Positions 55,466 through 58,322 of a stretch of DNA of 64,000 bases are shown here, one piece after another; position 1 is the stretch's first letter; every line of letters starts with the position of its first letter. The notes under the pieces were generated by a model. It was not told where the DNA came from and searched no databases. It saw only the letters and a list, made by a program, of their open reading frames with translations. The DNA is from Macrostomum lignano (Eukaryota): the NCBI GenBank assembly GCA_002269645.1, contig NIVC01002197.1, forward strand, positions 27,726 through 91,725, read 5' to 3'. Made by a program: the position numbers and the translations under genes.

Positions 55466-58322
55466 TTATCGAGTGTGGCGCTCTTCAGCGTCAGGTTTCC
55501 GCGTGACTAATTAAATTTCGCATTTTATTACCTCTCGGCTTGAACCTTTTCAGCTTTTTCAGAGTCTTTGGCAGAGCAGAAAATTTCGCCTTTCCAGCTG
55601 CGGCCAACTTCATGAAGTTCATCACCTGAGAGATCAAAGTCACGAACGAGTGTCGTTAGCTTTCATTAAAAGAACGCATTGCAAATTATTTAAAATTTTG
55701 ATAAAACTTTTCCACATTGACTCACGCTAGACACTCCGGATTTAGATGGCAGCGTGATCACTCTACCGCCGCTAACCCTGGCCAGGTAGTCATACTCGCG
55801 CTTGTACGCTCTGCCGCATAGTTTACCAGTTTTTACAACAAACAGGCGAATCTTCTTTCGCTTCAGTAGCCTGGCAACCGACCTCTTCAGGCGAGCATCC
55901 TTGGCCGATGCGTCCGTGAAGAGGAACAGGACCGATCTGGACAAAGCTCGACGAGCCGCGTCGCGTACGCCGGACAATGAGTACTCCGGACAGTCGCCTC
56001 CGCCGGTAGGACGAATGGCTCTAAGAAATTTGAGCGCGGACGACTTCCTTTTCACCGCAACTACCTGCGAAAGGTAAATGTAGTAAATCAGCAGTAAAAC
56101 AATGAGGTCAATACTGGCTCAACTACATTGACAGTTTGGTACTTCGTACCGGCAAAGAAATGTTCTGATATTGATCGAAAACTTCGAATACAGATGACCA
56201 AAATCTAGCATTTATCTTCCCAAAAAAATCGTACATTCCGCTCACGTAGTCGAATTTAAATTTAAAATTCCTGCTGTAAATCTTTGAAATACTTAATTCC
56301 AGTAATCAATTATCAAAGGAAATAACAAACTTGATTTAACAATGGGTGACAAAGATGAAAATTGCTTTGAAAGTAGTGAAAATACTTTTAGCTCGTAATG
56401 CTGTACGATTTTATCCACGAAACAGGGTTCCCAATTTCGTGTTTGCTGTTTTTACCTTTCGCTTGTACGGATCGCTAAACGTTGCCAAAACGTAATTTCG
56501 GAACCGACGATTAGCCGCAATAACGGAGCTGATGCTGGACCTGACGGCGCTGATCTCAGTTTTCATGGAGCCGGTCACGTCGATGACGAAGCCAAGAGAT
56601 CCCAGACGACGCGGACGAGGCGGCGGTCTCGGTCCGCCCTTACAGATTCTGCGACGCTTTACAACTCGACGATATCCGCGAGGGCAGTAGACGCGAGGGC
56701 AGTAGCCTGACGGAGTGTGGCAGCTTACGAGGTTATTCAAGTCTCTGCAGTGTAATTATTCTACATTAATCAGCACTTGTCTTGAAATGCTCACTTCTAA
56801 TCCTTTTGCAGATGCGCTTTCGAACGATTTTACAGCAGCCTGAAAAAAACCAGTTTATTCTATATTTTAGTATTTCGGTGAACACTTTTACTTGAATACT
56901 TCATGACAATAAACTCTGTTTAATTTACCTGGACGGATTCGCCTCAGTTTTTTAACAGTTTTTGGCAGCCTAAACGGAACTCTACCAGCTGATGCTAGAC
57001 CGATGTACTTCAGTACCTGTATAGATTGCAAACCGAGTCTTATAAAGTGAACTTCAAATCGAATGCAAATCAGTCCAATTGTTACAACAATATCGAACAG
57101 CTTGACCCAACTTACATATTTTACGTTCTTTTTGTTTCTTAGCCTGATGACGCCGCCACCGGACCTCTTGGCCAGATAGTCGTACTCGCCTTTGTACGAG
57201 CTGCCGCAAAGACGGCCGGATCGCACAACATAGAGCCGAGTCCTCTTGCGCCTGAGCAGGGCCGCCACAGAAGCTTTCAATCGGGCATCCTTAGCCGAGG
57301 CATCGGTGAAAAGATAGAGCATGGAATTCGGTCTGGCCGCTTTAGCCGCATCCCGGATGGCGGACAGAGAGTACTCCGGACAGTCTCCGCCGCCAGATGG
57401 CTTGATGGCGTTGATGTAATTTCTCACCCTCGTCGACCTGGACGAGCGCAGCACGCGTCGCCTGTAGGGATCGCTGAAGCGGGCAACAACAAAGTCGCGG
57501 AACAGCCGGTTGCGAGCCAGAATATAGGAGATCCGGCTTCTGACGCCGGCTATGTCGTCTCGCATTGAGCCCGAATCGTCAATCACGAAGCCAAGGCTGC
57601 CTAGGATGGGCCGCGGTCGGGGACAACGTCCGCGACGACGATACTTGCACACCACGCGATTCACAAGCACCGAACGATAGCCAGATGGGCAGCGCCTGGT
57701 ATGCGGCTTGCAACAGCAGCTTTTATGCGACTCTGCGTGCGTTTTTCCGTGCATATGTAGTTATTTTTGGTGAGTTATTTGTTCTACTGCAGAAATTCCT
57801 CTTTCCTTCAAGAGGCATATTCCGGTGCCTCACTGTCTGTCTTTCTGTCTGTCTGTCTGTCTGTCTGTCTGTCTGTCTGTCTGTCTGTCTGTCTGTCTGT
57901 CTGTCTGTCTGTCTGTCTGTCTGTCTGTCTGTCTGTCTGTCTGTCTGTCTGTCTGTCTGTCTGTCTGTCTGTCTGTCTGTCTGTCTGTCTGTCTGTCTGT
58001 CTGTCTGTCTGTCTGTCTGTCTGTCTGTCTGTCTGTCTGTCTGTCTGTCTGTCTGTCTGTCTGTCTGTCTGTCTGTCTGTCTGTCTGTCTGTCTGTCTGT
58101 CTGTCTGTCTGTCTGTCTGTCTGTCTGTCTGTCTGTCTGTCTGTCTGTCTGTCTGTCTGTCTGTCTTAGTGTCTGTCTGTCTGTCTGTCTGTCTGTCTGT
58201 CTGTCTGTCTGTCTGTCTGTCTGTCTGTCTGTCTGTCTGTCTGTCTGTTTATTTGTCTTACCTGCAATATTGATGCAGACGAGAACTATAACAGCTGCGA
58301 GAAAAACTTCTTTGAGCTTCAT
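55466..58322 (-). CDS. Secreted, highly cationic tandem-vWA protein (hemicentin-N/vWA7-like vWA x2), 8 exons, ~511 aa
   Basis: Minus-strand exons 58322-58262, 57732-57116, 57016-56929, 56839-56795, 56706-56456, 56064-55726, 55625-55532, 55506-55466 join in phase (1536 nt). Signal peptide MKLKEVFLAAVIVLVCINIA. Two vWA units: LGFVIDDSGSM / LGFVIDVTGSM, FSDP, GGGDCPEYSL, FTDASAKD. Confidence 0.85.
57834..58250. repeat. (TGTC)n microsatellite in intron 1 of the vWA gene
   Basis: Tetranucleotide run. Confidence 0.98.

Follow-up and report, generated by a model that had tools for sequence, protein, structure and literature searches.

A stand-alone, polycationic double-vWA protein of Macrostomum lignano as a candidate cross-linker of secreted polyanionic matrix

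For what purpose might a flatworm make a compact, extremely basic protein consisting of a signal peptide and two von Willebrand factor type A (vWA) domains? The question is raised by a gene on the minus strand of a 64,000-nucleotide stretch of M. lignano DNA (contig NIVC01002197.1, positions 27,726 to 91,725; hereafter, the window), which runs in eight exons from an ATG at position 58322 of the window to a revised end at 55017. The gene is intact, conserved and translated, far beyond what chance would produce. We propose, with a probability that we would set at roughly 0.55, that its product works in the extracellular space, where it would cross-link or condense a secreted polyanionic matrix as a bivalent agent, an argument made by analogy; the matrix could be mucus or rhabdite material, the secretion of the adhesive organs, or egg cement. 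Current explanations of how flatworms adhere temporarily and form mucus invoke two giant proteins together with an unknown anionic releasing factor. The gene described here points to a family of vWA proteins that are abundant, compact and folded as well as polycationic; the family is present in a published footprint proteome yet has never been examined.

Anatomy and charge of the encoded protein

The protein read from the corrected gene model comprises 512 residues, has an isoelectric point (pI) of 11.45, and carries 130 lysines and arginines (25.4%) versus 25 aspartates and glutamates, i.e., a net charge of +105. An initial annotation of the locus, made from the letters of the sequence, had put the basic share at about 24%, and its hand count for exon 2 (about 49 basic and 14 acidic residues) is matched by ours (49 and 13 in whole codons, plus one Glu with a split codon). 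The signal peptide (MKLKEVFLAAVIVLVCINIA) is the sole strongly hydrophobic 15-mer of the chain (mean Kyte-Doolittle value 3.0), with no second hydrophobic segment in the remainder. Eighteen of the 19 cysteines lie in the mature chain, and N-glycosylation sequons are absent from all 512 residues. After the signal peptide come two units, 52% identical to each other and each composed of a Cys/Arg leader, a VWA_4 domain and a basic tail, with the signature motifs at the places where the initial annotation had read them: DDSGS at residues 72-76, DVTGS at 313-317, GGGDCPE at 134 and 375, and TDASAKD at 163 and 404. Pfam recognised VWA_4 (PF25106) twice (E 2.7e-74, 248.8 bits versus a cut-off of 27; the best stretch, residues 319-471, spans positions 1-167 of the 169 in the profile) and detected no immunoglobulin (Ig), EGF or other domain. 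The assignment to the vWA subtype of hemicentin and VWA7 and the reported lack of Ig, EGF and transmembrane regions were thus both borne out.

Both domains retain the residues of a predicted metal-ion-dependent adhesion site (MIDAS), namely the DxSxS or DxTxS start, D137 or D378 of GGGDCPE, and D164 or D405 of TDA. Across 54 homologs, D378, C379, P380 and E381 are invariant, the MIDAS Asp and Ser positions are invariant or nearly so, and T404, D405, A406, K409, D410 and C437 are conserved in at least 90%. The family alignment further resolves each unit into a leader of the form C-P-x-G-Y-x-R-V-x5-(V/I)-C followed by a Pro/Arg linker, a vWA start of the form GSLGFVID(D/V)(S/T)GSM, and a final helix and tail, V(L/M)xF(I/M)xLAAxGxxxFxxLPxT(L/V)KKL, leading into a C(C)x7-8C element. 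The CC element contributed by exon 4 doubles as the start of the unit 2 leader, and the terminal exon provides an equivalent C-x7-C after unit 2. An AlphaFold2 model built on the 54-sequence alignment places 258 residues at a predicted local distance difference test (pLDDT) score of at least 90, with both vWA domains modelled confidently; the linker is predicted as β-hairpins at pLDDT 56-67, and the N-terminal leader and C terminus are poorly modelled.

The positive charge extends to the folded cores themselves. For comparison, 272 VWA_4 domain instances were excised from all collected homologs. Net charge averages -6.6 ± 4.9 in the 238 that lie outside the Macrostomum family and its unnamed close relatives, versus +24 and +28 in the 175-residue cores of the window protein, and the lone basic outlier among the 238 (+26) proved to be from M. 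lignano as well. Because of this gap, the polycationic character is a lineage-specific supercharging of a normally acidic domain, beyond basic linkers alone. Such natural supercharging of an extracellular matrix (ECM) domain, from about -7 to about +26 per domain with the metal site kept, should be of interest for protein engineering and biomimetic glues, and at 55 kDa the protein is recombinantly tractable, unlike adhesive proteins of 5,000-15,000 residues.

Translation, sister copy and exon model

Expression, the lack of which the initial annotation had named as counting against its proposal, is documented in the mass spectrometry (MS) supplements of Wunderer et al. 2019 (PMC6410801), a paper that is itself silent on the protein. 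Dataset S1, a pull-down with the lectin peanut agglutinin (PNA), contains NYINAIKPSGGGDcPEYSLSAIR and ASVAALLR, both encoded by exon 2. Dataset S2, obtained from footprints left on slides by adhering worms, contains these two peptides plus GGPRPPPRPR, SSISSVIAANR and NYVLATFSDPYK(R), all three from exon 5, as well as SVLFLFTDASAK, cFTQILITcR and AIRPTGGGDcPEYSLSGVR. Among all sequences compared, AIRPTGGGDcPEYSLSGVR (AIRPTGGGDCPEYSLSGVR), from exon 6, is found only in the window copy, and CFTQILITCR only in the terminal exon of a sister copy; therefore, each of the two copies is translated, the terminal exon as revised encodes protein, and the transcript is short. The footprint entry in question, {RNA815_2254.1}{RNA1310_12097.2}[RNA1509_27605], has a 1475-nt transcript, and its protein has a pI of 11.3 and similarity to hemicentin. 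Transcriptome open reading frames (ORFs) bearing the peptides of the gene are 491, 609 and 675 residues long versus 512 in the genomic model, and UniProt A0A1I8I8N4 (P0002) skips exon 4; these differences may reflect isoforms or repeat-induced misassemblies.

The sister copy, judged from sequence and synteny to be a homeolog or an allele, is GenBank BOX15_Mlig025149g1 (P0001; A0A1I8I8N4 is listed alongside), which is annotated only as "hypothetical" or "VWFA domain-containing" with no recorded function. A 523-residue version of the window protein had retrieved it at 94% identity, and the corrected model is colinear with it, gapless, and identical at 494 of 512 residues. Each gene has eight exons and 512 codons for amino acids, and the reference locus of the sister copy on NIVC01000032.1 is syntenic with the window, where DNA identity is 94.5% over the gene and 97-99% in the flanking sequence. 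Of the 18 amino-acid differences, six are charge-neutral K/R swaps, and another, T374N, tells the MS peptides of the two copies apart. Synonymous divergence (dS) amounts to 0.078 and nonsynonymous divergence (dN) to 0.018; together with the intact frames, the resulting dN/dS of 0.23 indicates purifying selection on both copies.

Eight exons had been proposed by the initial annotation, and homology with the annotated P0001 model upholds this number while moving the 3' end and, probably, one acceptor site. All exons lie on the minus strand. Exon 1 (58262..58322) carries the start codon and signal peptide and ends in a phase-1 donor, CAG/GTAAGA (slashes mark splice sites), with a structure identical to that of exon 1 in P0001. 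Intron 1 (57733..58261; 529 bp in the window versus 542 bp in the reference copy) is nearly filled by a (CTGT)104 microsatellite at 57833-58248, found by Tandem Repeats Finder (TRF) and in the sequence itself, which reads (CAGA)n on the coding strand. The 617 nt of exon 2 (57116..57732) encode leader 1 (residues 21-62, with 6 Cys and 13 Lys or Arg) and the entire vWA domain 1 (residues 63 to about 226, including DDSGS, GGGDCPE and TDASAKD; AlphaFold2 pLDDT about 90 or higher). Exon 3 (56929..57016) adds the final helix of vWA 1 and basic tail 1 (VLKYIGLASAGRVPFRLPKTVKKLRRIRP), conserved in an alignment (A1) of the window protein with P0001, P0002, P0004, P0006, P0007 and P0009. The CC linker (GCCKIVRKRICKRIR), i.e., the start of the Cys-rich leader of unit 2, is encoded by exon 4 (56795..56839), which P0001 has and P0002 skips. 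Exon 5 (56456..56706) carries leader 2 (YCPRVYCPRGYRRVVKRRRICKGGPRPPPRPR) together with the first half of vWA 2, including DVTGS; the second half, with GGGDCPE and TDASAKD, occupies exon 6 (55726..56064); and the final helix of vWA 2 plus basic tail 2 (VMNFMKLAAAGKAKFSALPKTLKKLKRFKPR) is found in exon 7 (55532..55625). The revised exon 8 (55017..55060), situated outside the interval first annotated, supplies a C-terminal Cys pair (GRRCFTQILLTCRR) and the stop codon. About 160 nt past the stop, a pattern scan returned ATTAAA (54852..54857, minus strand) as a candidate polyadenylation signal.

When P0001 was mapped on its own locus, its last exon fell about 460 bp beyond exon 7, and its exon 5 started about 36 nt further in than in the model first proposed. 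The corresponding terminal exon is intact in the window, where CCTTTTCAG/GTAGAAGATGC opens a stretch encoding GRRCFTQILLTCRR and a stop; its acceptor, CCTTTTCAG/GT, is conserved in the reference locus, where it begins the annotated terminal exon of P0001. The terminal exon first proposed (55466..55506) was rejected because its AG acceptor (TTAATTAG) reads TTAATTTG, with TG, in the 94.5%-identical reference locus, and because an annotated, peptide-supported exon exists at 55060-55017; the rejected segment is unused in the P0001 model and is most likely intronic. For exon 5, a CTGCAG/AG acceptor is out of frame, giving a frameshift with stop codons at the exon 4/5 junction. Two acceptors are in frame: one at 56742, 2 nt downstream of the CTGCAG site, which yields the open 523-residue frame yet is not the one annotated, and CCGTCAG/GC at 56706, which homology with P0001 makes the probable site and which we adopted. 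In the corrected model, all donors are GT, all acceptors are AG, and the frame is open across the eight exons.

Two other readings of the locus were set aside. A separate gene for each unit was rejected, as the 50 nt between exons 4 and 5 contain no ATG or signal-peptide exon, and the annotated mRNA and the MS entry also cover both units. Continuation into a giant mRNA like that of the 4112-residue paralog P0121 (below) was likewise rejected, since a tblastn search with P0121 matched only the two vWA units in the window. The stand-alone architecture claimed at the outset therefore holds at this locus, rather than splicing into a longer hemicentin-like mRNA: the terminal exon contains a stop codon, a convergent copine gene lies downstream, no paralog-like exons were found in the window beyond the terminal exon, and the transcript on record is about 1.5 kb long.

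Relatives and possible role

To which proteins is this one related? Two independent searches, one word-seeded over 5.8 billion proteins and the other an exhaustive HMMER run against 1.84 billion cluster representatives, yielded only 11 representatives below 1e-30. Every named one was from M. lignano, and the unnamed close relatives sit on contigs of about 1 kb from an unknown taxon; among named sequences, the family is thus confined to Macrostomum. Its members share a cassette defined by a CPxGYxRV...VC leader, a GSLGFVID(D/T)xGSM vWA start, a VLxFIxxAAxGxxxFxxxP tail and a C(C)x7-8C linker, all of which the window protein possesses; in addition to the members of alignment A1, the unit occurs in P0121, P0010, P0123 and P0149. 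Basic two-unit proteins are represented by the window gene and those of P0007/P0009 type, while Mlig027525 (753 residues) is a near-neutral protein of three units, Mlig000253 has six WSC domains around one unit, and Mlig000911 is a basic partial protein. In a rough neighbour-joining tree (computed without support values), the vWA units of one protein group together and not with their positional equivalents in paralogs, and basic and near-neutral units are interspersed; this suggests independent tandem duplications or concerted evolution, though we attach little weight to it.

The initial annotation missed that a double cassette of this kind also heads a much longer paralog, BOX15_Mlig022224g1 (Mlig022224, P0121; 4112 residues). 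Its N-terminal 512 residues, like the window protein, consist of a signal peptide and a double leader/VWA_4/tail/CxC cassette (44% identity over residues 26-510). Unlike the window protein, it continues into a VWD domain, ShK-like Cys motifs and some 3000 residues of K/R/C-rich repeats, and its vWA cores reach only +8 and +11. WSC domains are carbohydrate-binding modules, and vWD modules drive multimerisation in mucins and glues. Other entries of the Wunderer 2019 data touch the family as well. A probable longer transcript version of P0121 (5237 residues, pI 10.2, him-4/zonadhesin-like) appears in the footprint data with a high score (215), and the main text of the paper (PMC6410801) contains no discussion of it. 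A second basic member, of the P0009/P0124 type, was detected in the pull-down, footprint and tail proteomes (Datasets S1-S3, PMC6410801) through VRPHGGGDcPEMALQGVR, NSVLFLFTDASAK and GSLIFVVDDTGSMGR, with coverage of up to 32% of a 1242-residue entry of pI 11.75.

Outside the cassette family, the nearest sequences (E about 1e-20) are VWA7-like and hemicentin-like proteins of animals and bacteria, always with accessory domains that the window protein lacks. The window protein shares with VWA7 and hemicentin the VWA_4 domain, with its GGGDCPE and TDAxAKD signatures, a pair of conserved cysteines, and a MIDAS that begins D-x-(S/T)-x-S. VWA7-like proteins, however, also carry PF25107 (VWA7_N/Het-C-like), PF23619 and PF23560, none of which matches the window protein even at E up to 1, and hemicentin combines VWA_4 with a galactose-binding-like domain, a long Ig array, EGF modules and a fibulin-type C terminus over several thousand residues. 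Neither this architecture nor its length is seen here, where a 512-residue protein has only VWA-type Pfam matches and the DNA downstream holds no further homologous exons. The charges of the domains also differ (mean net -6.6 in VWA7 and hemicentin versus +24 and +28). Because the defining accessory domains were tested and are absent, the window protein is best classed, from its sequence, as a VWA_4 family member that is neither a VWA7 nor a hemicentin orthologue.

As to the claim that the family is undescribed, GenBank and UniProt already list its sequences as hypothetical or VWFA-domain proteins, and a published supplement contains peptides, such that the gene itself is no discovery. Full-text searches for Mlig025149, RNA815_2254, and Macrostomum with VWA or von Willebrand found no paper discussing the gene or family. 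What does appear to be undescribed is the family of the modular, naturally supercharged leader/VWA_4/tail/CxC cassette, which occurs by itself as well as at the N terminus of a giant vWD/K-R-rich protein.

The closest structural counterpart to the AlphaFold2 model is found in a mussel holdfast. In a Foldseek search, the top matches were 4cn9, 4cnb and 4cn8 (E 1.9e-15 for the best), i.e., PTMP1 (proximal thread matrix protein 1) of the mussel byssus. Like the modelled protein, PTMP1 (PDB 4CN8/4CN9) is secreted, stand-alone, and built of two tandem vWA domains; its MIDAS is occupied by metal (zinc), and it is a constituent of a holdfast laid down outside the animal. Collagens are known ligands of PTMP1, which is believed to cross-link them (PMC4754843). 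The two proteins differ in vWA subtype and are 12% identical in the structural alignment, PTMP1 is without Cys/Arg leaders, and the domain orientations are not comparable (root-mean-square deviation about 17 Å). A phmmer search of all PDB sequences gave no match at E up to 0.01 and hence none to PTMP1. The resemblance is accordingly one of architecture and analogy, not of family membership.

A second comparison comes from M. lignano itself. Mlig-ap1, the secreted Lys/Arg-rich cohesive protein of its adhesive organs (PMC6410801), is likewise extremely basic, Cys-rich and present in footprints. At 5,407 residues, Mlig-ap1 combines KR regions of low complexity with a C-type lectin domain, vWD-C8-TIL and 17 EGF modules, and has no vWA domain (PMC6410801); such domain content is absent from the window protein, in which the charge instead sits on folded vWA domains, and there is no sequence relationship between the two. 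Mlig-ap1 function depends on polycation-polyanion interaction, and experiments in which heparin blocked attachment, and Lys or Arg blocked release, established the importance of such interactions for adhesion of the worm (PMC6410801).

The cross-linker proposal draws on the analogy with PTMP1 and on the anatomy of the protein, i.e., a signal peptide, two VWA_4 domains and nothing else. The mature product would be a secreted, disulfide-stabilised protein of about 55 kDa, in which two MIDAS-bearing VWA_4 domains present polycationic folded surfaces and linkers. Each vWA domain would bind a carboxylate of its ligand via a divalent cation (Mg2+ or Ca2+) at the MIDAS. Both ions are abundant in sea water. 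The Arg/Lys surface, with its overall charge of +105, would meanwhile engage glycans that are sulfated or acidic as well as substrates with negative charge. The 18 mature cysteines, i.e., nine potential disulfides, would stiffen the leaders, pin the leader, the linker and the C-terminal hairpins onto the domains, and might also form intermolecular bonds. A role in a secreted matrix fits because paralogs pair the cassette with WSC domains or with vWD and K/R/C-rich repeats, and because polycation-polyanion interactions matter when M. lignano attaches and detaches.

Several observations weigh against this proposal. The neighbours of the protein in Dataset S2 include ribosomal proteins, DDX6, LSM14, PEPCK and arginine kinase; the footprint sample is therefore not pure secretion, and presence in it is no proof of secretion onto the substrate. 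Recovery in the PNA pull-down may reflect non-specific stickiness of a pI 11 protein, given its lack of N-glycosylation sites. The predicted template modelling (pTM) score of 0.48 makes the relative orientation of the two vWA domains unreliable in the AlphaFold2 model, and model confidence is low for the leaders and linkers. Neither the list of a tail-limited in situ hybridisation (ISH) screen nor the positional RNA-seq supplements contain RNA815_2254; although these are weak, uncontrolled negatives, the absence, if real, argues against an adhesive-organ-specific (tail) gene. No localisation, ISH or RNA interference loss-of-function data for the gene were found in the literature, and the gene was not found in the supplements of Wudarski 2017, Grudniewska 2018, Mouton 2018, Weber 2018 or Arbore 2015.

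Could the protein then serve a different secretion? A polycationic double vWA might equally act as a cross-linker in reproduction, as part of the cement-gland secretion or the eggshell, gluing or hardening eggs, or as a prostate or seminal-fluid protein that binds sperm or the female tract. Oocyte-type ribonucleoproteins (DDX6/me31B, LSM14/tral) in the footprint list do suggest egg or tissue material, and the family is lineage-specific, with copy number and charge that vary, a pattern common among reproductive proteins. A dN/dS of 0.23 is nonetheless unlike that of fast-evolving reproductive proteins, and the transcript is absent from the tail-limited seminal-fluid ISH list and from searchable testis-, ovary- and tail-region supplements (uncontrolled negatives), making us regard a reproductive secretion as unlikely. 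Slimmer is the chance of a defence polycation that coats or agglutinates microbes, or neutralises their polyanionic surfaces in mucus, with the vWA domains giving multivalency. Extreme positive charge on a secreted, disulfide-rich protein, a paralog with carbohydrate-binding WSC domains, and presence in externally deposited material would all be in line with such a function; yet with 512 residues and two folded domains the protein does not resemble known cationic antimicrobial peptides, it lacks an amphipathic or pore-forming element, its conserved MIDAS points to a specific protein or glycan ligand and not to membrane disruption, and nothing in the data ties it to infection.

It is similarly improbable that the protein resides inside the animal, as a matrilin- or hemicentin-like adaptor between cells and ECM or basement membrane, with its footprint presence being tissue contamination. 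VWA_4 is otherwise found in hemicentin and VWA7, and the footprint samples clearly contain intracellular contaminants; against this stand the complete absence of the hemicentin and VWA7 accessory domains, charges of +24 to +28 per domain that are unique to the Macrostomum family among the 272 domains compared, and the glue- or mucin-type modules (vWD, K/R-rich repeats) of the paralogs. Should it be an ordinary matrix protein after all, the gain is smaller: the gene model has been corrected, and both duplicates are proven to be translated. Lastly, the window copy might be a redundant, decaying duplicate from a recent genome duplication, with only the reference copy functional. M. lignano is a neopolyploid with duplicated loci (PMC10733133), and DNA divergence between the two copies is 5.5% over the gene region. 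With a frame intact over eight exons, canonical splice sites, a dN/dS of 0.23 and detection of the window-specific AIRPTGGGDcPEYSLSGVR by MS, decay of this copy is close to refuted.

The extracellular cross-linking proposal also admits a bolder version, which we consider quite unlikely. The supercharged MIDAS-vWA cassette would represent a class of flatworm secretion protein not recognised before, in which a folded, bivalent polycation joins polyanionic glycans into a cross-linked whole through both charge and metal coordination. The window gene, its basic paralogs and the 4112-residue paralog would jointly make up a major structural component of Macrostomum surface deposits. In that event, cassette proteins might contribute to the heparin- and Lys/Arg-sensitive attachment and release so far ascribed to Mlig-ap1 alone, and the near-neutral three-unit paralogs could be partners of the basic cassette proteins.

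Surroundings of the gene

Just 3' of the gene lies a dispersed repeat of about 300 bp (54282-54589), with a second copy at 31055-31348 (85% identity). It opens with a tRNA-like stretch containing a T-loop motif (GGTTCGATTCCC), in which ARAGORN found no tRNA gene; the repeat may be a tRNA-derived short interspersed nuclear element. Upstream of the gene, a GC-rich region (55%; approximately 59800-61600) contains broken ORFs, one of which (60478-60765, minus strand) gives a sub-threshold match to RVT_1 (E 5e-5, 23.5 bits versus a gathering score of 29.6), and the region is probably a decayed retrotransposon of the type without long terminal repeats. The next downstream gene, convergent at approximately 44950-48840 on the plus strand, is a copine (C2 and Copine domains) by synteny with positions 19865-23333 of the reference locus, to which the window is 99% identical there. 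The window is also dense in micro- and minisatellites, with 37 TRF rows scoring at least 200; satellite-rich places include 35114-40000 and, e.g., 3625-5303, 8108-8996, 10481-11628 and 21633-22870. The largest array extends over 4.9 kb in 188 copies of a purine-rich 26-bp unit, with a GC skew of about 0.8 and an AT skew above 0.5.

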